In this document: in pieces, positions 6,914-55,500 of the stretch
Layout of the letters: each line of letters starts with the position of its first letter
How positions within the stretch are numbered: the first letter of the stretch is position 1
NCBI RefSeq assembly: GCF_020745735.1
Contig: NC_083414.1
Coordinates: 54,194,013-54,258,012 of the forward strand
Length of the DNA stretch: 64,000 nucleotides
From: Hemiscyllium ocellatum
Taxonomy: Eukaryota
Direction: 5' to 3'
Program-made: the position numbers and the translations under genes
Notes under the pieces: generated by a model
The model's input: the letters and a program-made list of their open reading frames with translations, nothing else
The model's database searches: none
Told to the model about the DNA's origin: nothing

Positions 6914-7038
6914 CTGAAGAAGGGCTCATGCCCGAAACATCGATTCTCCTGCTCCTTGGATGCTGCCTGACCTGCTGCGCTTTTCCAGCAACACATTTTC
7001 AGCTCTGATCTCCAGCATCTGCAGTCCTCACTTTCTCC
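6914..7038 (+). mobile_element. Neptune-type PLE 3' terminal fragment starting at the HHR core
   Basis: CTGAAGA-A-GGGC-tcat-GCCC-GAAAC-ATC followed by gatgctgcctgacctgctg...ctccagcatctgcagtcctcactttctcc, homologous to 17414-17510 plus the tail. Confidence 0.85.
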
Positions 7039-7664
7039 TGAAAAACAGAAGTATCCATCCATTTTCTGTCTCCTGCGGTGGCTTCATAGTCCTAGTGCTT
7101 GGCTGTCTCCGTGGAATGGGGTGACACCAGCCCTTAAAGAAAAGGCTCAACAGAACATTCAGGGGCTGCCAAATATGTAATCTGACCGGCACATGCTCAG
7201 AGGTGATAAAAGGATGAGGCGCCTCATCCTCATTCAAGATGCCCCCTCTCTCAAGAGAATAGGGCAGCACCAGCAGAAAACCACAGGAAGGAGCAGTGAC
7301 AGAGAGGTGACCAAGAGTTTAATCTCAGGGTCATTCACCCAAAATGGTCTGCAATGCCATCTCATGTCTGCCAGTGAGCTCATTGCCTACAGATCAAGCC
7401 GAACAGAGTGCTCTTGCATATGGTCACCAGCAAAGGGCACTAAACACCTCGAAGCCTGCCAAAGCCTTCACAGTCACCAGGGCTTGCTATTCACTGGACA
7501 TCCACCACTCCAGCTGTATCTGGTGGGCCTGCATCTGTCAGTGGTGGGAGGCAAGTGAAGAAGAAATGCTTTTGAAGCCTTCTCTGTGTTACATTTACTA
7601 GATAAATAAATATAACTTTAACACATAAATATATGTTCAGTTCCACTGTCCTAATGTTTGGGAT

Positions 7665-7788
7665 TCCTGATGAAGGGCTTATGCCTAAAACATCGATTCC
7701 CCTGCTCCTCGGATGCTGCCTGACCTGCTGTGCTTTTCCAGCACCACACTCTTGGCTCTGATCTCCAGCATCTGCAGTCCTCATTTTC
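7665..7788 (+). mobile_element. Neptune-type PLE 3' terminal fragment (~125 bp) with decayed HHR and 16-bp TSD
   Basis: TSD tcctaatgtttgggat at 7649-7664 and 7789-7804. Core ctgatgaagggcttatgcctaaaacatc shows CpG decay in GAAA/stem III. Confidence 0.88.
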
Positions 7789-10354: not shown

Positions 10355-10800
10355 GGATGGGGGTGCCATTGGCAAGGTCAACATTTGTTTCTCATCCCTC
10401 TGAAAAGATGGTGTTGATATGCCTTCCTTAACAGCTTCATCCAACTGGTTCCAGGATATTGACACTACCTATGTGAAGGCATTGCACCGTAGTTCCAAAT
10501 TAAGGTAGTGTGTGAAATGGTGGGCAATGTGTAGATGGTGTTGTCCCCATGTGCTGTTGCCTCATCATTTTAGGTATCAGGATTGTTGGTTCAGAATGAT
10601 GGCATCTTAGCAAGCGACGATAGTGCATTTTGCTTATAGTGTGCATGTTTGGCATTGAATATCGGTGATAAAGCAAATGTATGTTTAAAATATGAACAGG
10701 TGTCAATCAAACAAGATGCTTTGTACTGGATTATATTAAACTTCTTAAGTGCTGTTGAACCTGAATATATCCAAGCTAGTGATGAGTATTTAGTCATTCA
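10355..10800 (-). mobile_element. CR1-group LINE 3' fragment (same family as 40310-41040)
   Basis: Reverse complement gives KKFNIIQYKASCLI and the tail gggatgagaaacaaatgttgaccttgccaatggcacccccatccc. Confidence 0.6.
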
Positions 10801-11449
10801 TCCATTTTGTACTGGTTTTGTAGTTAAAGTATTTACTTTTTTTTCCCCCAACAGTACCACCTAACAGAAGCAGTGCTTATTTTTCCCCATGTTGTGGGTG
10901 TGCAGATGTAAAACACCGTGAAGTACAATGAGTGCAGAATGTTCATGTTCCACCACCAGGAAGAAAGGAAACATTTGAGTGCCCAGTAATAAGCAGAGCC
11001 CTTCTCAACAAAGATTAATGCTGGGTGATCAAACAGTGAAGGGGCAGTATTTACTTGGTAACATTAGTCTAATTAAGAATCTGGTCGATGGTAGCACACA
11101 ATACATCAACATGCATGAATCCAGTGAAAGTCATGGAGAAATAGGTAGATTCTCTTTGTTGAAATAATATAGTTCCATTAAATAATATTGTTGCTTGGCA
11201 CTTGTGCAGTGTGCATCTTACTTGGCAGATATCAGCACAAGTCTGAAGATTGTCCAAGTCTAAAGGCAACTAGGAGTGATCGTTTTGTGCAACCTTCTGT
11301 CTCAATATAATGATTTGTGTTATGGTTATCTATTCTGTGTTAAGTATGATCTGATGGGGTTCAGGAATGTCACACTGCCAGTGGAGTCTCTGCTGCATTT
11401 GCTGCCAAGGAGGGCAATGGCTTGCTGGCCTCTGTTTTCTCGGAGCCTT

Positions 11450-12900
11450 CTTCTCCTCATCTTGTCCAATGTGATTCCCAATAGTCAGCTGCCAGGAGTC
11501 ACGACCATCAGTGACAATCTGCTATTGTCATTGTCAATGTCTGCCAGCTTTATATCTTGCCTGCAGATGTCTTTGTAATATAGGTATGGACACCCAGAAC
11601 AATGTGACCCAGTGGCCAATTCACAGTACAAAAGCTCTTTATATATGCGGCCATCTTCCATCAGAAGAACTTACTGAGTCATCACAATCCTTTAATGAGT
11701 TTAGTAATGATTGCGTGCTGATGAAGTCAGCATATTTCAACAATTCTGCAGGTCGTGACCCTGCCATGCCAAGGAACAACAAAGGATATCGATGAGTCAG
11801 TAAAGGCGAAAACATTTCAGACTTTTCTATTGCCTAGCATATGTTGTCTAGGACTCAGCATTGTAAAGAAGTGAATTACAGATATAAATTTGGTATACTT
11901 GCCATTGGTGCTGTCAGTCTTAGATTGGATTTTACAGCTTCAGCTTTTGTGATAGGCATGCTGATTTCTGCTTCAAATGACAGACTGCTGATGATTGTGC
12001 AGCCTTGATACATGAAGCTATTAACAACTGCCAGAGTCACATTATCAAAGCTGATAATGGTGGCGTAGCAAAATCCTGGATGCCAACATTTGTTTTCTTG
12101 ATGCTGGTGGCCAAAATAGACTGTTCACAGCTTGGAGGGAGTCTATCCAATTCAGGAAAAGCTGTTCCTCAGAACAGTGTGCCAGTGTGGCATCATCAGC
12201 ATACAGCAATGCTCTAAAGGAGGACTTGGTATTTTGGATCCCAAGTGAGCAAGGTTGAACAGTTTTCAAATCAGCCCGGGCAAGAAATTAGACACCCTTT
12301 GTAGGTGACCTGAAGAAGACCCCAAAGTTCCAGGACACGATCTTGTCAGACATCGTCATGGATCTGAGCTGTTTCAACAAGCAGTCTGGTTCTCCAGCTG
12401 TTTAAATCGATCACCTCTGCTCACGTGGTCGAATGCCCGTGTGAGATTGATGAAGGTAATATTTAGAGGTCATTGTGTTCACAGCACTTTATTTTCAGCA
12501 GCTGAACTGAGTAGTTCATGTCAATTACAAATGTTGCAGTTCTGAAAGCATACTGGGATCGGGAGGTGATGGGTTCAGCCAGGGTCTGGAGTCTGTGAGG
12601 GCAACATGAGCACATACTATTCCCATGATACTAAACATGGATACTTCATAGTTGCCGTAATTGCCTTTCTTTTGTGCAGGGTCGCACGCATATCCTAGAC
12701 CCCTCTCATTAGCAGAGATAGAGAAGTTTGCCTCGATATTGCAGGAGCACTGGTCTCAGATGGTATAGCAACAATAGCTTAAGCCTGACCCATGGCAAAT
12801 GAGACAATTGCTTTGCTCAATTCATTCACTCTGGCCTTGATATCAAGCTCTGTTATGACAAGCTCTCTATGCTTTCAATGGAGTCAGACCTGCCAGACCT
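11450..12900 (-). mobile_element. RTE-clade LINE remnant
   Basis: Minus-strand ORF 12045-12269 contains RALLYADDATLAHCSEEQL, typical of RTE RT motif C (LLxADDxxLxAHSE). Heavily degenerate; boundaries uncertain. Confidence 0.6.
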
Positions 12901-13769
12901 GCTGCCCTTTTGATCCACTCATAAATCCCTTCAACATTCTCTATGATGAAAGACCTGCAAATATTCTCGCCAAGTGGCAACCAGTCATCATTGGCACACT
13001 TCCTGCTAGTCTCATGGAACTTGTTTCAAACAACTCTTACTTTCTTCAGATTCTTTTCATTCCGATCTCTCTTGCTAAGTCTAGACTGTTTGGATTTAAT
13101 GACACATTGATTTCTGCCTTGGACCAGTTAGCACTTTTTTCATTCTTGCTTCTGTATACTGTGATTGCAAATGGTGTCTCAAATTAGCTTCACTTCACTT
13201 CTGCATTGGCTATGACAAAGCCAGAGAGTGCCTGTATAACTGAGTCACTGAGTTGTTAATTGTTAACTAAATAGGCAGTATGGCTGATACTAATATAAGG
13301 ATGGGATTTTTACTTTGAACGAAAACATGCCCAAGGTTGCACTGTCAACCTAATGAATATCAGGGAATGAACTGTATCACAATGAGCATTATGGCAGCTG
13401 CATGTATTGAGAATGCTATTCAGAGAGTCACATCAAGTAATGTGCAGATGCAGTTTGTGCACATGCTTTGTTCTTGGATATCTCTGGAACACTTTGTTGT
13501 CTGGTTTATTTTCCAGTCAGGTAATAGTTATACAAATCTCATTGTAGCCGCAAAGCTCAAGTAGCTTCTGCTTGTTCCCATTTACCTTTCCCAGATTCAA
13601 CAAGACCATGTGTCATAGTCTGTGTCCATTCCTGCACTGAAATTTCCAAATTGCTAAAGGTGTTATGATTTAGGAATGCCAATGATAACAGTGAAAAGTT
13701 CATTTAAAAATGGCCTTTCACCTCTATATTGAAACAAAGACGTTAACTAGCTTTCAGTAATAAGACATT

Positions 13770-14200
13770 ATTAGAACCATCATTTTTTGTGGTATTCAGC
13801 ACCTTCAGTTGCTTCCTGATACCATGTGCAGTGAGTTGAATTGGCTGAAAATTGGCATCTATGTTGCTTTGGAGCTGAGGATGAGGTCAAGGTGGAACAT
13901 CCACTCGGCAATCCTGGATGAAAAAGCAACTTTCTCTTTTGTCCTGATATGATGGGCTCCCCTTTCATTGAGAATGGAGAATATTTATGAAGCCGCCTCC
14001 TCCAGTTCACCGTACAATTTACCACCATTCACTACTGGAATGGCAGGAGTGACAGAGTGTTAACCTGCTCTGTTGTTGGTCAGATTGCTTAGTTCTATAT
14101 TGTATGCTGATCTGTTGTTTCGCATTATAACTGTGCTGTAGTTTCACCAGGTTGTCACTTCATTTTTCGGTAAGCCTGTTATTCCTGGCAGGCTTTGTCA
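13770..14200 (-). mobile_element. CR1-group LINE internal fragment
   Basis: Decayed similarity to the LINE family at 40310-41040 / 57036-58065 (aatttaccaccattcactactggaatggcagg... motif). Confidence 0.45.
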
Positions 14201-14212
14201 TATTCTTTACAT

Positions 14213-14504
14213 CATGGAATCTTTACAGTGAAAGCAGGCCATTGAGCCCATCAAGTCCACACCGATACCCCAAACAGTATCCCATCTAGGCCCAACCCCC
14301 TGCCTATCCCTGTAACACAGCATTTCACATGGCTAATCCATTTAGCCAGGATACTACAGGCAGTTAAGCATGGCCAATTCACCTAATCTGCATACCTTTG
14401 GACTGTGGAAAGAAACCGGAGCACTCGGAGGAAACCCACGCAGACATGAGAAGAACGTGCAAACTCCATACAGACAGTAGCCTGAGGGTGGTATCGAACA
14501 CAGG
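14213..14504 (-). mobile_element. HE1-like V-SINE, missing its 5' tRNA head
   Basis: V-domain ggactgtggaaagaaaccggagcactcggaggaaacccacgcagacatgagaagaacgtgcaaactccatacagacag and a CR1-derived tail (aggccattgagcccatcaagtccacaccga). The sequence breaks at the box-B region (atcgaacacagg). Confidence 0.85.
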
Positions 14505-15281
14505 TGCTCGCGATGCCAGAAGACGGGTGAATTCCACTCAATTGCCTGTCACTATCCCAAATGCAAAGGTGCTATGCAGACTGTGATGGGAGAGTTTCAA
14601 TGTGAAATCTGTGAGGCCAACTTCACAACCAAAAGCGGTCTAAGTCAGCATGAAAGACATATGCACCCGGAATTGAGGAATAACAAGCGCATAGAGGCCA
14701 ACAATCCTACAGCAAAAAGACAGAAAGGGGCGTGGTCTGAGGAGGAAGAAACCCTCTTGGAACAACTAGAAATAAGCCTCGCTGGCGCCAGGTTTATCAA
14801 TGCCGAGATTGCTAAAGTCCTAACAAAGAAGACCTCCAAGCAGATCTCAGACAAACGCAGGTTGCTCCAGAAAAAACGGCTAGCCCAAACCGCTACCCCA
14901 ACAATCCCTCAAGTGTCTGAGAGAGAGGAGCAAGAGCCCGTACATGAGGAGGAAAATGGCTTGGCGGCACCAATAGAGCAACAAGTTCCATATAAAATTC
15001 CGGCGACACTCCCTCAACACAGGGAAGTAGATGAACAGATCAGACAGGCCGAGGAACTATTGCAGAAAGCTAATGATCCACTCTGCATGGCTCAAGCTCG
15101 AGGGTTGGTAGACTGTATTACTGACGAAATAAACGGTGGACAGAACAGGAAACACCCCTGCAGACGGCAAAGAGAGATCAACAGAAAGGCCGAAAAGAAG
15201 GGCAACAGCAATGGTGCGAGGAAACGTTATGCCACTAAAAAAAGCAGTCTTTAAAGACCCCCAAGACTTATACCGAACCAA
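14505..15281 (+). mobile_element. R2 non-LTR retrotransposon N-terminal fragment (CCHC ZnF + CCHH ZnF + Myb; R2-A-like), outside rDNA
   Basis: The frame of ORF 14574..15254 is open upstream to 14505: CSRCQKTGEFHSIACHYPKCKG (CCHC), then FQCEICEANFTTKSGLSQHERHMHP (CCHH) and WSEEEETLL..RFINAEIAKVLTKKTSKQISDKRR (R2 Myb). After a frameshift in the A7 run it continues KKAVFKDPQDLYRT, resembling the R2 pre-RT motif. Confidence 0.85.
14574..15254 (+). pseudogene. 226-aa ORF: R2-derived C2H2 zinc finger + Myb DNA-binding domain, no RT or endonuclease
   Basis: ORF track plus the motifs above. The stop results from an apparent 1-nt indel in an A-run near the 3' junction. Confidence 0.7.
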
Positions 15282-16353
15282 AAGTTTTACATTTCCTGCG
15301 GTTGCAGGGGAAGGTGCTGGGAGTGGAGGTTGGGTTGGTGGGGGGTGTGGACCTGACGAGGGAGTCACGAAGGGAGTGGTCTTTGCGGAATGCTGATAGG
15401 GGAGGGGAGGGAAATATATCTCTGGTGGTGGGGTCCGTTTGGAGTTGGCGGAAATGACGGCGGATGATACGTTGTATACGGAGGTTGGTGGGGTGGTAGG
15501 TGAGAACCAGTGGGGTTCTGTCTTGGTGGCAGTTGGAGGGGTGGGGCTCAAGGGCGAAGGAGCGGGAAGTGGAGGAGATGCGGTGGAGGGCATCGTCGAT
15601 CACGTCTGGGGGGAATCTGCGGTCCTTGAAGAAGGAGGCCATCTGGGCTGTATGGTATTGGAACTGGTCCTCCTGGGAGCAGATGCGGCGGAGACGAAGG
15701 AATTGGGAATATGGGATGGAGTTTTTACAGGGGGCAGGGTGGGAGGAGATGTAGTCCAGGTAGCTGTGGGAGTCAGTCGGTTTATAGTAGATGTCTGTGT
15801 TGAGTCGGTCGCCCGAGATAGAAATGGAAAGGTCTAGGAAGGGGAGGGAGGAGTCTGAGACAGTCCTGGTGAATTTGAGGGCGGGATGGAAGGTGTTGGT
15901 AAAGTTGATGAACTGTTCAACCTCCTCGTGGGAGCACGAGGCAGCGCCGATACAGTCATCGATGTAGCGGAGGAAAAGGTGGGGGGTGGTGCCAGTGTAG
16001 TTGCGGAAGATGGACTGTTCCACATATCCTACAAAGAGACAGGCATAGCTGGGGCCCATGCGGGTGCCCATGGCAACTCCTTTAGTTTGGAGGAAGTGGG
16101 AGGATTGGAAAGAGAAGTTATTCAGGGTGAGGACCAGTTCAGTCAGTCGAAGGAGGGTGTCAGTGGAAGGGTACTGGTTCGTGCGGCGGGAAAGGAAGAA
16201 GCGGAGGGCTTTAAGTCCTTCGTGATGGGGGATGGAGGTGTACAGGGACTGGATGTCCATCATGAAGATAAGGCGTTGGGGACCGGGGAAGCGAAAATCA
16301 TGGAGGAGATGGAGGGCGTGGGTGGTGTCCCGAATGTAGGTGCGGAGTTGGAC
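15282..16353 (-). pseudogene. PLE reverse transcriptase (N-truncated, frame open, YIDD intact)
   Basis: The part of ORF 15268..16668 from QLRTYIRDTT onward. The preceding residues are antisense read-through. Confidence 0.85.
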
Positions 16354-17262
16354 TATACCTCCTCCCACCCTGCCCCCTGTAAAAACTCCATCCCATATTC
16401 CCAATTCCTTCGTCTCCGCCGCATCTGCACCCAGGAGGACCAGTTCCAATACCATACAGCCCAGATGGCCTCCTTCTTCAAGGACCGCAGATTCCCCCCA
16501 GACGTGATCGACGATGCCCTCCACCGCATCTCCTCCACTTCCCGCTCCTCCGCCCTTGAGCCCTGCCCCTCCAACCGCCACCAAGACAGAACCCCACTGG
16601 TTCTCACCTACCACTCCACCAACCTCTGTATACAGCGTATCATCCGCCGTCATTTCCGCCAACTCCAAACGGACCCCACCACCAGGGATATATTTCCCTC
16701 CCCTCCCCTATCAGCGTTCCGCAAAGACCACTCCCTTCGTGACTCCCTCGTCAGGTCCACACCCCCCACCAACCCAACCTCCACTCCCGGCACCTTCCCC
16801 TGCAACCGCAGGAAACACAAAACTTGCGCCCACACCTCCTCCCTTACTTCTCTCCAAGGCCCCAACGGATCCTTCCATATCCGCCACAAATTCACCTGCA
16901 CCTCCACACACATCATCTATTTCATCCGCTGCACCCGATGTGGCCTCCTCTATATTGGGGAGACAGGCCGCCTACTTGCAGAACGCTTCAGGGAACACCT
17001 CTGGGACGCCCGGACCAACCAACCCAACCACCCCATGGCTCAACACTTTAACTCTCCCTCCCACTCCACCGAAGACATGCAGGTCCTTGGACTCCTCCAT
17101 CGCCAGAACATAACAACACGACGGTTGGAGGAAGAGCGCCTCATCTTCCGCCTGGGAACCCTCCAGCCACAAGGGATGAACTCAGATTTCTCCAGTTTCC
17201 TCATTTCCCCTCCCCCCACCTTGTCTCAGTCGATTCCCTTGAACTCAGCACCGCTCTCCTAA
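16349..17262 (+). pseudogene. PLE thumb + Cys linker + GIY-YIG endonuclease (frame open)
   Basis: C-terminal part of ORF 15886..17262, with GIY-YIG motifs and the Neptune-type CxxC and His residues. Confidence 0.85.
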
Positions 17263-17413
17263 CCTGAAATCCTCTTCCTGACCTCTCCGCCCGCACCCCA
17301 CTCCGGCCTATCACCCTCACCTTGACCTCCTTCCACCTATCACATCTCCATCGCCCCTCCCCCAAGTCCCTCCTCCCTACCTTTTATCTTAGCCTGCCTG
17401 GCACCCTCTCCTC

Positions 17414-17449
17414 ATTCCTGATGAAGGGCTCTGGCCCGAAACGTCGAAT
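17414..17449 (+). ncRNA. Minimal type I hammerhead ribozyme (PLE, Neptune-type), intact core
   Basis: ATTC-CTGATGA-A-GGGC-tctg-GCCC-GAAAC-GTC-GAAT: stem I attc/gaat, stem II gggc/gccc, palindromic stem III ACGT, GUC cleavage triplet (predicted cut after 17445). Confidence 0.85.
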
Positions 17450-18929
17450 TTCCTGTTCCTTGGATGCTGCCTAACCTGCTGTGCTTTAACCAGCAACACA
17501 TTTTCAACTGAAAAATAAAGCCAACATGTGCTTCATTATATCTGCAGATACCAGGCAGATTTTAGAAGCCTGATTCATCTTGGTATCCTCTGTTATTCTA
17601 AAGACAGAAAAGAACTTTTCTGGACCTGAGGTGTCAGTTGAATCAGAAATCTGACTACATTATAATTGTTTCTAAAAAAAAGCTGGAAGATAAAATAATA
17701 AACAATACCGAAGAAGGAAAGCAACTTTACAGAAACAATTCTTTCAAGGATATAATGTTCAGACTAATCCCTGGATTCAAGTGGCAAAACAACAAGATCA
17801 GGTTAAAAAAAAACTTGCAAAAAAAGGGAAAATATTGTAAAGCATGTATTGAAAATTTGATTTGTAAAATAGGCAAACATATATTAAAATGTTGCAACAA
17901 ATACAAGAATAATATTGCCATATATTGAAAATGATAAAACAAGTATTAAGATAAAGTGTGATTTCTTAATGGGCAAACAGTTAAGATACTAAATTATACT
18001 AACATACTTTTAAGTAATGTTTTGTCTGAACGGGTTGATTAGAGATCATGAAAACAGCAGAACCTATTCATCTTCATCAACCAATATCACTATTCAAACA
18101 GATCAATGATAATCTGTGCTTTAATTGATTAAGTCGTCATTATAAATGTTACTTTTTCTGGACAACTGCGATGGTAAAATCCCTCCATTCGTCATGGAAG
18201 ATGAGTGTGCATGAGTTATCTTCCAAGGCTGGATTTTTCATTTGGAGTGGGATTTAATTTGGGCTGTGAACCTCTATGTCCAGCATGGCATAAAACTTTA
18301 TTTTCATTGTGTTCGAGTCTGAATGATCGGAGAAAAGGGTCCAGTGCACCCTTAGTACCTGGAATTCAGAAATGGAGGTGGGAAATAAGATTGAGCTATC
18401 AACCAATATTGTGCATGGTCTTAAAAAGTGAGAGTGTCTTTATCTTCAGAGTATCTTGGGAAAATGGAGAGCTGGGACTCATGATAGATTACGGAAATGT
18501 TGGTTTGTAAAATATTATTCCTGCTAGATTGGCTGCTTGAACTTGGCATTGTAACCAGCTGCCTTGACTTCAATTCACCAAACTAACAAAAGGGGCAACT
18601 TCACTTTCCCACCAATCCTCTCCTCATCCTTGGAAAATCATCAGAGTCATGAATAGAGGCAGCAGCCTCAATACCTTTCCCACTCCAAGTCAGTTTCAAC
18701 ACAAATTGGAACAGTATTTCCTGGTATTCAATGTTCATCCCGATTAATCCACCATGCGTCCCTTGGCAATCAATTAGATAAAATTACACGTTTGAATTTG
18801 CTACAAATGCCAGGAAATCGGTTGCCAGATCTTACCTCCAAGAATTCAAGTGAAAAGAAATGTCACAAAAGCAGCTGAAACATATTCAAAATATGACAGA
18901 AGTTGTGATGGAAAGAAGGTTCATCCATT

Positions 18930-22251: not shown

Positions 22252-25155
22252 CTATACTAGCCCAATAACTTCCAAATGCCTATCCAATGCCCGCTTAAAT
22301 GAACATAAAGAAGGAGAGTTCACCACTGATACGGGCAGGGCATTCCATGAACTCACAACCCGCTGTGTGAAGAATCTACCCCTAACATCTGTCCTATACC
22401 TACCACCCCTTAATTTAAAGCTATGTCCCCTAGTAACACCTGACTCCATTAGCGGTAAAAGGTTCTTAGTATCTACCCTATCTAAACCCCTAATCATCTT
22501 ATACACTTCTATCAGATCTCCCCTAAACCTTCTCTTCTCCAATGAGAACAGCCCCAAGTGCCTCAGCCTTTCCTCATAAGATTTTCCTACCATTCCAGGC
22601 AACATCCTGGTAAACCTCCTCTGCACTCTTTCTAAAGCTTCCACATCCTTCCTATAGTATGGCGACCAAAACTGCACACAATACTCCAGATGAGGCCTCA
22701 CCAGAGTCTTATACAACTGCAACATGACCTCAGGACTCCGGAACTCAATTCCTCTGCCAATAAAGCCCAGTACACCATATGCCTTCCTCACAGCACTATT
22801 TACCTGGGTGGCAACTTTCAGAGATCTGTGTACATAGACACCAAGATCCCTCTGCTCATCCACACTACCAAGTAGCCTACCATTAGCCCAGTAATCCATC
22901 ATCTTGTTATTCCTACCAAAGTGAACGACTTCGCACTTAGCTACATTGAATTCCATTTGCCACATTTCCGCCCAGCTCTGCAACTTATCTATATCCCGCT
23001 GTAACCTACCACTTCCTTCCTCACTATCCACAACTCCACCGACTTTTGTGTCATCCGCAAACTTGCTTACCCAGCTTTCAAGTCCTTCCTCTAGATCATT
23101 TATAAAGATAACAAAAAGCAATGGTCCCAAAACAGATCCTTGTGGTACACCGCTAGTAACTGCGCTCCAAGATGAACATAATCCATCAACTACTACCCTC
23201 TGTCTCCTTCCAGCCAGCCAATTCCTAATCCAAACCTCTAATGTATCCTCAATGCCATACCTCCGAAGTTTTAGCATTAGCCTACCATGGGGAACCTTAT
23301 CGAACGCCTTACTAAAATCCATATACACAACATCTACTGCTTTACCCTCATCCACTTCCTTAGTCACCTTCTCAAAGAACTCAATAAGGTTTGTGAGGCA
23401 CGACCTGCCCTTCACAAAACCATGCTGGCTATCCCTGATCACGTTATTCCTACCCAGATGTTCATAAATCTTATCCCTTACCATTCTCTCTAAGACTTTG
23501 CTCACCACTGAAGTCAGACTCACTGGCCTATAGTTACTAGGGCTATCCCTACTCCCTTTCTTGAACAATGGGACCACATTCGCTATCCTCCAGTCCTCTG
23601 GTACTATTCCCGTTGACAATGACGACATAAAAATCCAGGCCAATGGCTCTGCTATCTCCTCCCTAGCTTCCCATAGGATCCTGGGGTAAATGCCATCAGG
23701 CCCAGGAGACTTATCTATATTCATCCTTTCCAATATTCCCAAAACCTCTTCCCTGCATATTTCCAGGGCATCCATTCTAATTATTTGTGATTCCATATTC
23801 ACATCAGCAACAGTGTCCTGTTCCTGAGTGAATACTGATGAAAAGTACTGATTTAATGTCTCTCCAATCTCCTCCGCCTCCACACACAACTTCCCACTAC
23901 TATCCTTGACTGGACCGATACCTACCCTAGTCATCCTTTTATTCTTGACATACCTATAGAAAGCCTTTGGGTTTTCCCTAATCCTACCAGCTAAAGACTT
24001 TTCATGTCCCCTTCTCGCTTTTCTTAGCTCCCTCTTTAGCTCCTTCCTGGCTACCTTATAACTCTCAATCGCCCCTACTGAACCTTCACGCCTCATCTTT
24101 ACATATGCCGCCTTCTTCTCTTTCACAAGGGACGCCAATTCCTTACTAAACCACGGCTGCCTCACAAGGCCCTTTACACCATGCCTGACTGGTACATACC
24201 TATCGAGGACACGCAGTAGCTGCTCCTTGAACAATCCCCACATCTCATTAGTGTTCTTCTCTTGAAGCCTGTTTTTCCAATCCACACAACCTAAGTCATG
24301 CCTCACTGCATCATAATTTCCCTGCCCCCAGCTATAGCTCTTGCCCTGCGGCGCACGATTATCCCTCTCCATCACTAAAGTAAAAGTCACCGAGTTGTGG
24401 TCACTGTCCCCGAAGTGCTCACCTACCTCAAAGTCTAACACCTGGCCTGGTTCATTACCTAGAACCAAATCCAATATAGCCTCCCCTCTTGTTGGCCTGT
24501 CGACATATTGTGTCAGGAAACCCTCCTGCACACATTGTACAAACACCGACCCATCTAATGAACTCGAGCTATAGCTCTCCCAGTCAATATCTGGGAAGTT
24601 AAAGTCCCCCATAACAACCACCCTGCTACCTTCACTCTTTTCCTGAATCATCCTCGCAATATTATCCTCTACTTCTCTAGGACTATTAGGAGGCCTGTAG
24701 AAAACACCTAACAGGGTGACCTCACCTTTCCTATTTCTAACCTCAGCCCAAACTACCTCAGATGGCAAGTCCTCTTCCATCGTCCATTCCACTGCTGTGA
24801 TACTGTCTTTGACAAGTAATGCCACGCCTCCCCCTTTTTTACCCCCATGTCTGATCCTACTAAAACATTTGAACCCTGGAACGTGCAACAGCCATTCTTG
24901 TCCCTGTTCTACCCACGTCTCTGTAATGGCCACAACATCGAAGTCCCAGGTACCAACCCACGCTGCAAGTTCACCTACCTTATTCCTTATACTTCTGGCA
25001 TTGAAGTATACACACTTCAATCCTCCTTTCTGGTTACAGGCACCCTCCTTAGAGATCGCTGCATTATTCCTAACCTCCCTACACTCAAGGTCCTGTACCC
25101 TAAAGCTACAGTCCTGGTTCCCATGCCCCCGCGGAGTTAGTTTAAACCCTCCCAA
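22252..25155 (-). CDS. CR1 ORF2: APE endonuclease + reverse transcriptase, uninterrupted 967 codons
   Basis: APE motifs YFNARS, ITETW, YRPP, GDFN, LDLVL, SDH; RT motifs PGPDG, NYRPVSLTS, QHGF, DFSKAFDKV, GVPQGSVLGP, KFADD. No in-frame ATG before the APE domain. Confidence 0.93.
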   Translation of the reverse strand: MGGFKLTPRGHGNQDCSFRVQDLECREVRNNAAISKEGACNQKGGLKCVYFNARSIRNKVGELAAWVGTWDFDVVAITETWVEQGQEWLLHVPGFKCFSRIRHGGKKGGGVALLVKDSITAVEWTMEEDLPSEVVWAEVRNRKGEVTLLGVFYRPPNSPREVEDNIARMIQEKSEGSRVVVMGDFNFPDIDWESYSSSSLDGSVFVQCVQEGFLTQYVDRPTRGEAILDLVLGNEPGQVLDFEVGEHFGDSDHNSVTFTLVMERDNRAPQGKSYSWGQGNYDAVRHDLGCVDWKNRLQEKNTNEMWGLFKEQLLRVLDRYVPVRHGVKGLVRQPWFSKELASLVKEKKAAYVKMRREGSVGAIESYKVARKELKRELRKARRGHEKSLAGRIRENPKAFYRYVKNKRMTRVGIGPVKDSSGKLCVEAEEIGETLNQYFSSVFTQEQDTVADVNMESQIIRMDALEICREEVLGILERMNIDKSPGPDGIYPRILWEAREEIAEPLAWIFMSSLSTGIVPEDWRIANVVPLFKKGSRDSPSNYRPVSLTSVVSKVLERMVRDKIYEHLGRNNVIRDSQHGFVKGRSCLTNLIEFFEKVTKEVDEGKAVDVVYMDFSKAFDKVPHGRLMLKLRRYGIEDTLEVWIRNWLAGRRQRVVVDGLCSSWSAVTSGVPQGSVLGPLLFVIFINDLEEGLESWVSKFADDTKVGGVVDSEEGSGRLQRDIDKLQSWAEMWQMEFNVAKCEVVHFGRNNKMMDYWANGRLLGSVDEQRDLGVYVHRSLKVATQVNSAVRKAYGVLGFIGRGIEFRSPEVMLQLYKTLVRPHLEYCVQFWSPYYRKDVEALERVQRRFTRMLPGMVGKSYEERLRHLGLFSLEKRRFRGDLIEVYKMIRGLDRVDTKNLLPLMESGVTRGHSFKLRGGRYRTDVRGRFFTQRVVSSWNALPVSVVNSPSLCSFKRALDRHLEVIGLV

Positions 25156-29182: not shown

Positions 29183-30409
29183 AGTTTATTACCAACAGAA
29201 CAACTGTACAATACCTTCTGAAAGGGGGTTTGATGTAATGTACTTTTACTACATGCAACTAAAAAGACTAATTTCTATACTGGGAGTATTTCCCACAATT
29301 AACAGCTCAATTAGTACATACAATATGTTGTCGTGATGAAACTGTATAAAAAGGATGGCCCTATATACAAAGACAAGGGCAACCAAGAGTAACTTTGCAC
29401 TAATAGTGTGCTCAGTATAATACTCAGTACGAATTTCAATTCTTCTCTTATAAATGCAGCAATTTCTTTTAAAAAAAGATGAGCAGATCCTGATATTTTT
29501 GAATATTTTAACATATAAATTGGCAAGAATAAACATGTATATTGCAGAGATTTTACTCCACATATTGCTTTGACATGAGGTGATGCCAAGAACTGTATCA
29601 GATAGCATTTCTGGGTTCTGGGTATGCAAGTGAGTATTCTGGTGAATTGTACAACTATATCAATATTTGACTTTGATACTTAGTTCATCGAGGTCTAAAG
29701 TAATACTTAACCATCTATGTGTCAAAACTGTAAAGGTGAATGGGTGAGATTTTAAAAAGCAAAACTGTTTTGAGTCGAATGCTTAAAATACAACCCCAAT
29801 TAAGAAATGAAAATATCATCTATTCAAGCATCACATTTATAAAGACCATAATGAAAAGGAATTTAATGGCTGTTTTACCACCAAAATCCATGCACTAGAC
29901 TCACTTACAGTGCACTAATTAGATGATGGACCACTTTGAAATTGTGAAAAGGTTTTGGCTTCCTGATTGAATACCTTGGAAAATTACTCCTGCAGCAAAT
30001 AATCTTGCTAATTTAATGCTATTATCACAACAATACACTTGCAGGGTAGATGTAATGCTTTCCTCAAATATATAGGGTGAAAATAGATGGTTTAGATGCA
30101 TTCTGATATGTGCATTGACAAGCTGATTTGCCATTAGGACTCAAAGGATACTGGGTAATTAATTAGATTTTGAGAATTTTTAATAATGCATTGTCTCACA
30201 GAGAATTCCACTCCATGTAAATTGACATTTAATTTGTGTTTTCCCTAATAACTATTCCAAAGATAGAACTGTGACTAACTCAATAATATTTCCCATAATG
30301 GGAGATAAATTTTATTGTTCTTGTAAATTATTTCAATAAGTATTTATAAAGTTATGTTATAAAGTACACGTGCTTAATACTTAGTGTTTATCAGATAAAT
30401 ATTCTTATA

Positions 30410-30796
30410 GTTAAAAAATGAGGTCTGCAGATGCTGGAGATCACAGCTGAAAATGTGTTGCTGGTCAAAGCACAGCAGGCCAGGCAGCCTCATTTCCCCT
30501 CCCCCCACCTTGTCTCAGTCGGTTCCCTCAACTCAGCACCGCCCTCCTAACCTGCAATCTTCTTCCTGACCTCTCCGCCCCCACCCCACTCCGGCCTATC
30601 ACCCTCACCTTGACCTCCTTCCACCTATCCCACCTCCATCGCCCCTCCCCCAAGTCCCTCCTCCCTACCTTTTATCTTAGCCTGCTTGGCTACTCTCTCT
30701 CATTCCTGATGAAGGGCTTATGCTCGAAACGTCGAATTCTCTATTCCTGAGATGCTGCCTGGCCTGCTGTGCTTTGACCAGCAACACATTTTCAGC
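30410..30796. mobile_element. Neptune-type PLE pLTR hairpin insertion with 14-bp TSD
   Basis: Inverted tail 30410-30488 plus pLTR 30489-30796, near-identical to 17200-17508. TSD taaatattcttata at 30396-30409 and 30797-30810. Confidence 0.92.
30702..30737 (+). ncRNA. Minimal hammerhead ribozyme (Neptune-type PLE)
   Basis: ATTC-CTGATGA-A-GGGC-ttat-GCTC-GAAAC-GTC-GAAT. Confidence 0.8.
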
Positions 30797-31146
30797 TAAA
30801 TATTCTTATACCTGAGTACTGACCGAGTTGTTTTTATGACTAATAACTCCTTAATACTTTCTACAATGAAACTGTTACTACACTTAAAGTACTTCATTGG
30901 CTTTAAAGCATTTAGGTCATTCTGAAGTAATGAAAAGTGCAATGTAAATTCAAGATTTTGTTGCCTTTTTTGACCACGGTTTATTTTAGTATTGATATTT
31001 AAATGTTGGCTTGCTCAATAGATGTTAATACAGTCTTAAGAGTAATGCAGATGCCAAGTGACCCAGTCCTCAATTTCATTCACACAACCATTTGACGATA
31101 TCATTAAAAATCACCAATCCTCAATTCAAAGATAAGGTTTTCACAA

Positions 31147-41040: not shown

Positions 41041-41369
41041 AACATTGCCATTAAAACACGGTGACAAGTGAGTTTTGTGAGTTTCTGTCTTGGTCCGAGG
41101 TGGATTACTTCCACGTTTCACCTCAATAATTAGATAAATGAGATTTGTTGAAGAATCTCATGCTGAGCAAGAGGGATGTGCTCACCATTGCCAGGGTCAT
41201 CTGACTTTCATGTCTCTAATGCCAGGTACACTCATTTAACACTCAGGTGTACTGCACCTCAGCTGCTTCAAGACAGGCAGCCAATAATTCAGTGCTCAAT
41301 TATTTGTGCCTTAAGTTAATATTGGGACCCAGGGTGTCTGGATGCCTCCAAGTAAGCATTAATATCTGT

Positions 41370-41450
41370 GAGTCGAGAGTGTGGTGCTGGAAAAGCACAG
41401 CAGGTCAGAGAGCATCCAGGGAGCAGGAGAATCAATGTTTCAGGCAAAAG
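41370..41450 (-). mobile_element. Neptune-type PLE tail fragment
   Basis: gagagtgtggtgctggaaaagcacagcaggtcag...gagcaggagaatcaatgtttc is the reverse complement of the 7690-7755 region. Confidence 0.75.
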
Positions 41451-52599: not shown

Positions 52600-55500
52600 C
52601 TAACAGGGAAAGCAGATGAACTCAGGGCATGGAACTAGGATATGAAAGCAATTACAGAAAAATGGCTCAGAGATGGACAGGACTGGCAGCTTAATGTTCC
52701 AGGTTACGAATACTACAACAAGGATAGAAAGGGAGGCAAGAGAGGAGGGGGAGTGGCATTTTTGATAATGGATAGCATTTCAGCTGTACTGAGGGAGGAT
52801 ATTCCCGGAAATACCTCCAGGGAGGTTATTTGGTTGAACTGAGAAATCAGAAAGGGATGATCACCTTATTGGGATTGTATTATAGACCCCCTAATAGTCA
52901 GAGGGAAATTGAGAAACAAATTTGTCAGGAGATCTCAGTTATCTTTAAGAATAATAGGGTGGTTATGGTAGGGGATTTTAACTTTCTAAACATAGACTGG
53001 GACTCCCATAGTGTTAAAGGTTTAGATGGAGAGGAATTTGTTAAGTGTGTACCAGAAAATCTTCTGATTCAGCATGTGGATGTACCAACAGAGAAGGTGC
53101 AAAACTTGACCTACTCTTGGGAAATAAGGCAGGGCAGGTGACTGAGGTGTCAATGGGGGAGCACTTTGGGGTCAACGACCATAATTCGATTAGCTATAAA
53201 ATAAACATGGAAAAAGATAGACCAAATCTAAACGTTGAAGTTCTAAATTGGAGGAAGGCTAATTTTGATGGCATTAGAGAAGAACTTTCAAAAGCTGATT
53301 GGGGGCAGATGTTTGCAGGTAAAGGGATGGCTGTAAAATGGGAAGCCTTCAGAAATGAGATAACGAGAGTCCAGAGACAGTATATTCCTGTCAGGGTGAA
53401 AGGAAAGGCTGGTCGGTGTAGAGAATGCTGGATGACTGAAGAAATTGAGGTTAAGAAAAAGAAAGAAGCATATGTCAGGTACAGACAAAATTGATCAAAT
53501 GAATTCTTAGAAGAGTATAAAGGCAGGAGGAGTATACTTAAGAGGGAAATCAGGAGGGAAAAAAGGGGACATGAGATAACGTTGGCAAAAAGGGTTAGGG
53601 AGAATCCAAAGGGTTTTTACAAATACATTAAGGACAAAAGAGTAACTCAAAAGAGAATAGGGCCCCTCAAAAAATCAGCAAGGCAGCCTTTGTGTGGAGC
53701 TGCAGAATATGGGAGAGATATTAAACAAGTATTTTGCATCAGTATTTACTGTGGAAATGGATATGGATAATATAGAATGTAGGGAAATAAATGGTGACAT
53801 CTTCAAAACTGTCCATATTTTTGAGCAGGAGGTGCTGGATATCTTGAAATGCATAAAAGTGGATAAACCCCCAGGACCTGATCAGGTGTGCCCGAGAACT
53901 CTGAGGGAAATTCGGGAAGTGATTGCTGGGCCTCTTGCTGAGGTATTTGTGTCATTGATAGTTACAAGTGAGGTACTGGAAGACTGGAGGTTCACTAATG
54001 TGGTGCCACTGTTTAAGAAAGGTGATAAGGACAAGTCAGGGAACTATAGACCAGTGAGCCTGATGTCGGTGGTGGGCAAGTTGTTGGAGGGAATCCTGAG
54101 GGACAGGAGGTACATGTGTTTGAGGACTAATTAGGGATAGTCAACATGGTTTTGTGCATGGGAAATCATGTCTCACTAACGTGATTGTGATTTTGAAGAA
54201 GTAACAAAGAGGATTGATGAGGGCAGAGCGGTGGACGTGATCTATATGGACTTCAGTTAGGCGTTTGACAAGGTCCCTCATGGGAGACTGGTTAGCAAGG
54301 TTAGATCTCACATAATACAAGGAGAACGAGCCATTTGGATACAAAACTGGCTCAAAGTTAGAAGACAGAGGTTGGTGATGGAAGATTGTTTTCAGACTGG
54401 AGTAGTAGTTGTGACCAGTAGAGTGCCACAAGGATCAGTGCTGGGTCCACTACTTTTCATCATAAATGATTTGGATGTGAGCATAAGAGGTATAGTTAGT
54501 AAGTTTGTAGATGACACCAAAATTGGAGATGTAGTGGACAGCGAAAAAAGTTACCTCAGATTATGACGGGATCTTGATCAGATGGGCCAATGGGCTGAGA
54601 AGTGGCAGGTGGATTTTAATTCATATAAATGAGAGGTGCTGCATTTTTTGGAAAGCAAAACTTAGCAGGAATTATACACTTAATGGTAAGGTCCTGGAGA
54701 GTGTTGCTGAACAAAGAGACCTTGGAGTGCAGGGTCATAGCTCCTTGAAAGTGGAGTCACAGGTGGATAGGATAGTGAAGGAGCTTCTATCAATCAAGCA
54801 GATGTACTGGGAGAACTAATGACCAACACAACCCTTGGACCTGATGGGATGCATCCTCGGATATTCAAAGAAGGAGCTACAGATATCATGGATGCACTCG
54901 TAATTGTTCAAGAATCCTTAGCATCAGGAAAAGTGCTGGAGGTTTGGAAAACTGTCAATATGACACCTTTATTCAAGTAGGGAAGGAGGCAAAAAACCCA
55001 GTAACTGCTTCCCAGATCAACATCTCCTAGCTTAATGTCTGTTTGCAGAAAAATGTTAGCGTAAGTTGTAAAGGATGTAACAGCAGAGCATTTAGAAATA
55101 CTTAATGTGATCAAGCACATTCACCATGGCTTCATGAAGGGGAAATCATGTCCGAAGTTATTAGAGTTCTTTGAGGAGGTAACAAGCAGAGCAGATAAAG
55201 ACCGATAAATATTTGGATGTCCAGAAGGTGTTGATTATTATATCACTACCTAATCAGGTAAAAGCCCATGATGTTAGAGGTATTATGTTTGGTATGCTTT
55301 CCTTTATTGGTCAGAGCATTGGGAGATCATGTTGTGGCTGTACAGGACATTGGTTAGGCCACTGTTGGAATATTGCATGCAATTCTGGCCTGCTTCCTAT
55401 CGGAAAGATATTGTGAAACTGGAAAGGGTTCAGGAAAGATTTACAAGGATGTTGCCAGGCTTGGAGGATTTGAACAAAAGGGAGAGGTTGAATAGTCTGG

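Follow-up and report, generated by a model that had tools for sequence, protein, structure and literature searches.

Introduction

The R2 family is normally confined to ribosomal RNA genes, and R2 is under development as a site-specific gene-insertion tool, which makes its natural off-target and escape routes relevant. Shark lineage-A R2s in 28S genes have been published as R2-1_STig, R2-1_CMax, R2-1_CCar and R2-1_CPu/CPl (PMC13188248). The canonical insertion form of Penelope-like elements (PLEs) comprises an inverted 5′-truncated copy and a tail (PMC8557442), and a PLE-type enzyme has been reported to cut and extend both strands (PMC11167929).

Here, we analyzed a locus at which a piece of R2 abuts a PLE insertion, within a 64-kb stretch of DNA that is referred to throughout as the window. 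The piece shares the N-terminal order ZF2–ZF1–Myb–linker with the lineage-A R2s of vertebrates, which have three zinc fingers (R2Tg, PDB 9dou and 9nl3; R2-1_STig, R2-1_CMax and R2-1_CCar), but unlike these elements it lacks ZF3, the reverse transcriptase (RT), the restriction-like endonuclease (RLE) and the UTRs, and it lies outside 28S. The adjoining PLE structure resembles canonical PLE insertions, both as published (PMC8557442) and as found at 30398–30811 of the window, in placing an inverted copy beside a 5′-truncated copy with an intact right 3′ end. It differs from them in that the inverted arm abuts R2 and lacks 684 nt at its outer end, as well as the tail and the target duplication (TSD).

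Results

Coding content of the R2 fragment

The R2 fragment comprises 777 bases on the plus strand of the window (Table 1). An open frame runs from its first base to a TAA codon, a length of 249 codons, and encodes CSRCQKTGEFHSIACHYPKC (CCHC) and CEICEANFTTKSGLSQHERHMH (CCHH), followed by the Myb-like stretch WSEEE...KQISDKRR. Pfam returned C2H2 and Myb signals on the fragment below threshold only. A phmmer search against all PDB chains placed three R2 proteins at the top, 9nl3_A, 9dou_A (R2Tg) and 9nl2_A, with E values of 1.4e-29 to 1.9e-26 over residues 1–126/135, and all other chains at E ≥ 0.009. The PDB alignment begins at chain residue 41–44 (262 in a chain with an N-terminal extension); the fragment thus starts with ZF2 and does not include ZF3.

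Table 1 Positions of the R2 fragment, its neighbours and a reference PLE insert in the window.
Feature	Position	Strand	Basis
R2 ORF internal fragment, lineage A	14505–15281	+	PDB chains, library proteins, blastn to L002/L005/L004
ZF2, CCHC zinc finger (C1, C4, H16, C20 of fragment)	14505–14564	+	Aligned to R2Tg CAKCGK..HSVVCHFPKC
ZF1, CCHH zinc finger	14601–14666	+	Pfam zf-C2H2_4/zf-C2H2, residues 31–54, both below cut-off; PDB alignment
Myb-like DNA-binding domain, WSEEE ... KQISDKRR	14730–14861	+	PDB alignment; Pfam Myb weak, E 0.07
A7 run with 1-nt insertion	15237–15243	+	Frameshift produces TAA 15252–15254
SINE-like remnant, putatively tRNA-derived, 5′ head absent	14215–14504	−	Direct reading
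SINE/R2 microhomology zone, TCGAAC(-)CA	14494–14504		Alignment with L002 starts at 14494
Penelope-like element copy, inverted, RT part	15282–16348	−	RVT_1; left repeat arm 15282–15758
Penelope-like element copy, 5′-truncated, GIY-YIG, intact 3′ end	16349–17509	+	3′ end set by 5 other copies
Canonical PLE insert, same family	30398–30811		13-bp TSD AAATATTCTTATA on both sides, ~35-nt tail (GTTAAAAAATGAGGTCTGCAGATGCTGGAGATCAC)

An exhaustive HMMER search yielded 548 relatives, with 176 library proteins at E ≤ 1e-10. The best relatives were P0001, which is 82% identical and has a ZF3 upstream of its matching region, and P0002, which is 81% identical and continues into the RT. The open frame of the fragment ends where it does because of one extra A in the A-run. 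Past this run the +1 frame reads TKKAVFKDPQDLYRTK, the counterpart of TKKAAYKETQALYRNN in P0002, and the R2 homology therefore extends to 15281. The same run is one base shorter in L001, an R2-bearing sequence from Chiloscyllium punctatum that is described below, and some other R2 copies in the read runs are also short of one A. The zinc ligands are all intact and the fragment contains no stops and a single frameshift.

The frame and the PDB alignment agree with the original prediction, which had proposed a frame open upstream to 14505 and a CCHC, CCHH and Myb order, and whose coordinates were right. The alignments confirm that the fragment, as read from its sequence, encodes the ZF2, ZF1, Myb and linker portions of a lineage-A R2 protein. 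Its location outside rDNA is likewise upheld, no rRNA having been detected in the window. The best matches are R2 proteins and not host zinc finger or Myb genes, since the top three PDB chains are R2 and the nearest proteins are R2 of C. punctatum. The R2 piece is a non-functional leftover, which does nothing today.

R2 features absent from the window

We searched the window for the remaining parts of an R2 element. With eight R2 proteins as tblastn queries, no R2-clade RT was found in the window, and the sole R2 region was 14433–15248 (14502–15248 with close relatives). The C-terminal parts of full-length R2 proteins, which carry the C-terminal CCHC motif and the RLE, had no match in the window, nor was a second R2 piece present elsewhere in it. 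No rRNA, 28S included, was detected by Rfam at the gathering score in the whole 64-kb window. The fragment spans only nt ~796–1573 of the element, and neither the R2 5′ HDV-like ribozyme nor the UTRs were found, with Rfam blank over 13500–18500 at E ≤ 1. No target duplication was seen, in that the right flank GAAAAATAAAGCC is without a copy on the left side. These blank searches of the window accord with the earlier statement that it holds no R2 RT, RLE or 3′ end, no 28S and no TSD.

Other RT matches in the window, at 22903–23760 and 53826–54515, are 22–27% identical to R2 RTs and belong to other LINEs, the second match being weak. A 967-aa ORF at 22252–25155 on the minus strand of the window encodes a non-R2 LINE reverse transcriptase.

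Relatives and copy number of the fragment

The closest public relatives of the fragment are all from C. punctatum, and the nearest proteins are R2 pieces from that species. By blastn, the fragment is 90% identical to L002 and L005, which are short, frameshifted, low-copy C. punctatum contigs and its nearest relatives, and 85% identical to L004. It corresponds to L004 1132–1909, which is nt ~796–1573 of an R2 element of at least 4.2 kb. L004 (C. punctatum BEZZ01008166.1, 4545 nt) opens with 28S sequence (Rfam LSU, E 1e-19) that ends in ...AACTATGACTCTC, and continues as a near full-length R2. Since L004 occupies the canonical 28S site, the lineage is an ordinary 28S-specific R2. The L004 lineage differs from the published R2-1_CPu. 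At the 5′ junction of L004, the 28S sequence halts at ...ACTATGACTCTC, without the usual TTAAGG.

We compared the fragment to the R2 copies in the reads. Between the fragment and the abundant R2 of the window's organism, 48 of 364 and 55 of 389 aligned letters are mismatched (~87% identity; three samples), and the contig depth of this abundant R2 is 238 in run X1 and 433 in run X5, or ~35–45 times the single-copy depth. The letters specific to the window occur in the reads at single-copy depth only. Identity of 87% to the abundant R2, together with these single-copy letters, indicates that the fragment belongs to a low-copy sub-lineage and not to the currently abundant R2. Thus, the sub-lineage of the fragment, at 90% identity to L002 and L005, is distinct from the high-copy R2 of its own genome. 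By eye, it is also distinct from the bamboo-shark R2-1_CPu/CPl, the fragment being more like R2-1_STig and R2-1_CMax (PMC13188248). At least two R2 sub-lineages were observed in both sequenced organisms (runs X1, X2, X5 and X13; window 14487–15281), one at high depth with ~87% identity to the fragment and others at low depth with 88–91%.

Relative to three C. punctatum copies, the fragment carries 37 private substitutions, which are distributed 9/7/21 over the codon positions (chi-square ≈ 9.3, p ≈ 0.01). This split suggests that much of the divergence arose in an active element before insertion. The decay of the fragment itself, with one frameshift and no stops, is modest. The fragment adds one more copy to an already known type of element, and its state of decay is ordinary. 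The suggestion of a possibly undescribed shark R2 lineage is not sustained, given the published shark lineage-A R2s (PMC13188248) and the near full-length L004 in C. punctatum 28S. Nor is the description of the lineage as recently active supported, for the abundant R2 is only ~87% identical, the 90% relatives L002 and L005 are low-copy and frameshifted, and the window letters are single-copy.

The left neighbour and left junction

The SINE remnant on the left is cut at its head. A B-box-like GTTCGATACC marks the cut end (14489–14500, minus strand); nothing is left of the A-box part or of the remaining tRNA-like head. No second copy of this SINE, a putative HE1 element in the original prediction, was found in the window or in L001 with word sizes down to 7. 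The motif TCGAAC(-)CA suits the B-box region of the SINE as well as the R2 letters immediately upstream of ZF2, which leaves the left boundary fuzzy by ~10 nt. The upstream R2 sequence, ...CATTCGAACCAA, was seen as a loose end in run X2. Judged from the letters of both partners, the left junction is a 6–8-nt microhomology joint. The flanking ORFs at 12792–13187 and 18205–18510 are non-coding in appearance.

The Penelope-like neighbour and right junction

The PLE structure on the right is built around an inverted repeat of 477 nt (15282–15758 and 16349–16825), which is 97% complementary, the arms differing by 3.4%. Domain searches matched RVT_1 on the minus-strand ORF (E 1.3e-7) and GIY-YIG on the plus-strand ORF (E 1e-4), both above the cut-offs. 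The right copy has the same 3′ end as five other copies in the window. The inverted arm stops 684 nt before the 3′ end of the element would be reached, and tail and TSD are missing. Both neighbours are cut at the junctions with R2, as had been claimed. A hammerhead-type motif, CTGATGA...GAAAC, lies at ~17414–17449, with CTGATGAAGGGC...CCCGAAAC kept among copies and no Rfam match at E ≤ 1. The canonical insert of the same family (Table 1) consists of 48 nt of the 3′ terminus in inverted orientation and then a 5′-truncated copy of ~310 nt, and both of its arms have the element's 3′ end as their outer end. The Penelope-like family is present at a summed contig depth of 1e5–3e6, against a single-copy depth of ~7–10.

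At the right junction, R2 would continue as ...GAACCAA|CAGGC and the PLE reads ...GCGC|AAGTTTT, and the window has GAACCAAAAGTTTT, leaving a homology of 0–2 nt. The best-supported loose ends, as listed at 15282 in four runs, all go on with PLE sequence. A mobile chimeric R2–PLE unit was considered and is rejected for now, on these loose ends and on the single-copy depth of the R2 letters of the window.

A second orphan R2 fragment in C. punctatum

A comparable piece is present in C. punctatum. The locus L001, on the 11.5-Mb scaffold BEZZ01000006.1, carries at its own positions 10487–11828 an internal R2 fragment equivalent to L004 nt 1475–2812, and no further R2 was found within 10 kb of it. 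Like the window fragment, it is internal to R2, truncated on either side and located outside rDNA. It differs from the window fragment in extending from the end of Myb to the middle of the RT, in belonging to a sub-lineage 94% identical to L004, and in its other neighbours. A lone internal piece, which the original prediction had called unexpected, therefore has a counterpart.

The L001 fragment is cut on its 3′ side ~110 nt upstream of a hammerhead-like motif, CTGATGA...GAAA, on the minus strand. In L001, again as in the window, a plus-strand R2 piece adjoins a minus-strand repeat that bears a hammerhead-like motif.

Discussion

Origin of the R2 fragment

We propose, with a probability of roughly 0.55, that the fragment is ordinary transposon debris, the remains of a dispersed, 5′-truncated R2 copy that lost its 3′ part by deletion. 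An R2 cDNA, 5′-truncated within the ORF, would have joined into an older SINE via the TCGAAC–CA homology, and sealing by short homology is usual for the 5′ ends of non-LTR insertions. A Penelope-like copy would later have landed nearby, as a 5′-truncated copy and an inverted 5′-truncated copy, with both outer ends formed by the 3′ end of the element. One deletion may then have taken the remaining R2 sequence (at least 2.6 kb) together with the SINE head and the DNA in between, and from the arm its TSD, its tail and the outermost 684 nt, fusing R2 nt 1573 to the PLE arm at 15281/15282. This deletion could have happened at Penelope integration or later, through end joining.

Several features of the data argue for insertion followed by deletion. 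The canonical right copy, combined with a left arm that is without its outer 684 nt, tail and TSD, points to a deletion with breakpoints in the arm and in R2. The high density of PLEs makes the adjacency of R2 and PLE unsurprising, and the orphan piece in L001 indicates that dispersed R2 remnants recur. On the other side of the balance, the fragment is so well preserved that it may be little older than the PLE hairpin, this explanation needs three events, against one complex event for capture of R2 sequence, and the R2 piece and the TPRT-anchored PLE copy are co-oriented, as template switching requires, an orientation that has a 50% chance of arising at random. Two origins had been offered in the original prediction; the one by insertion and then deletion fits better, as judged from the canonical insert at 30398–30811, while the one by capture is geometrically possible and is not favoured.

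A rather unlikely alternative, in our view, is that the PLE RT, or a repair polymerase, made the R2 piece on an R2 RNA template in the event that formed the inverted Penelope structure. In such a capture by template switching, or as filler, Penelope cDNA synthesis would have copied PLE RNA (16349–17509), then PLE cDNA to give the inverted arm, and then R2 RNA from nt 1573 to nt 796, before the TCGAAC homology sealed the strand into a break in the SINE and target DNA was lost. This history, itself improbable in our judgement, suits several features of the locus. Read 5′ to 3′, the bottom strand consists of antisense PLE, sense PLE and antisense R2, which one continuous RNA-templated synthesis could have produced; the R2 piece is oriented as the anchored PLE copy is; both junctions are abrupt, with short homologies, and a TSD is absent; and the limited decay of the fragment is in keeping with the hairpin's age. 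Moreover, both strands are extended by PLE enzymes, which do not need homology to initiate internally (PMC11167929). However, a simple deletion accounts equally well for the truncated arm, the missing tail and the missing TSD, whereas no second example of capture was found, the PLE copies among the loose ends listed in four runs continuing as PLE at 15282. The jumps must also start and finish inside both templates, R2 RNA is scarce as a template in comparison with rRNA, snRNA or mRNA, and the copied R2 lineage is not the abundant one of the genome (87%). Chimeric retrocopies of the U6–L1 type, which Buzdin et al. reportedly traced to template switching by a LINE RT, offer a partial parallel. 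As here, the parts of such LINE chimeras are co-oriented with the anchored element and meet at abrupt junctions; LINE chimeras carry TSDs, and their 5′ partner is an abundant small RNA, whereas this locus has no TSD, its parts are separated by an inverted PLE segment and the RNA partner is rare.

An origin at the level of DNA is less probable again. It would have an R2-bearing piece of rDNA, either an orphon or extrachromosomal, or a free R2 cDNA end-joined into a break between the SINE and the PLE arm, with no retrotransposition machinery acting at the site. A patch in a repaired break would have the appearance seen here, with both ends internal to R2 and both neighbours truncated, but 28S is absent from the window. 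We regard it as very improbable that the 226-aa ORF (14574–15254) is a host gene or domesticated exon encoding an R2-derived DNA-binding protein. The frame of 249 codons is open, the zinc ligands and Myb are intact and the substitutions are biased to third codon positions, yet this bias is equally expected from evolution in an active R2 before insertion. Domestication is rejected because a frameshift in a homopolymer closes the frame while still within R2 sequence, only 0.00–0.01 of the fragment's words occur in two RNA runs from the same sample, and the closest proteins are all R2 pieces from C. punctatum. There is a similarly slight chance that the assembly has united unrelated repeats. Both flanks are repeats and the inverted structures of PLEs are known to trouble assemblies (PMC8557442). 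However, the two 31-mers sampled across 15281/15282 are both present in run X25, which derives from another sample of this organism, S18, and a different study from that of the DNA sample S3, and 59–71% of the fragment's words are present in three samples. We retain, as the preferred account, the insertion of a 5′-truncated R2 copy followed by deletion.

Implications and related repeats

On its own, the fragment is another piece of decayed transposon and alters little. Together with L001, it adds to the signs that a 28S-specific R2 lineage has left pieces outside rDNA in hemiscylliid-like sharks. Were template switching the true origin, the locus would be a natural record of a switch from a telomerase-like PLE RT to the RNA of a site-specific LINE, and would provide one route by which R2 sequence leaves rDNA in sharks. 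It would then also represent a cross-family event by a Penelope-like RT, an enzyme whose integration mechanism is poorly understood.

The window also contains short copies, at 6914–7004, 7663–7748 and 41363–41445, that comprise only the 3′ module of the PLE with its hammerhead-type motif. Such copies may represent retrozyme-like, non-autonomous relatives of this PLE; two of the three modules continue into the tail sequence CTGATCTCCAGCATCTGCAG.
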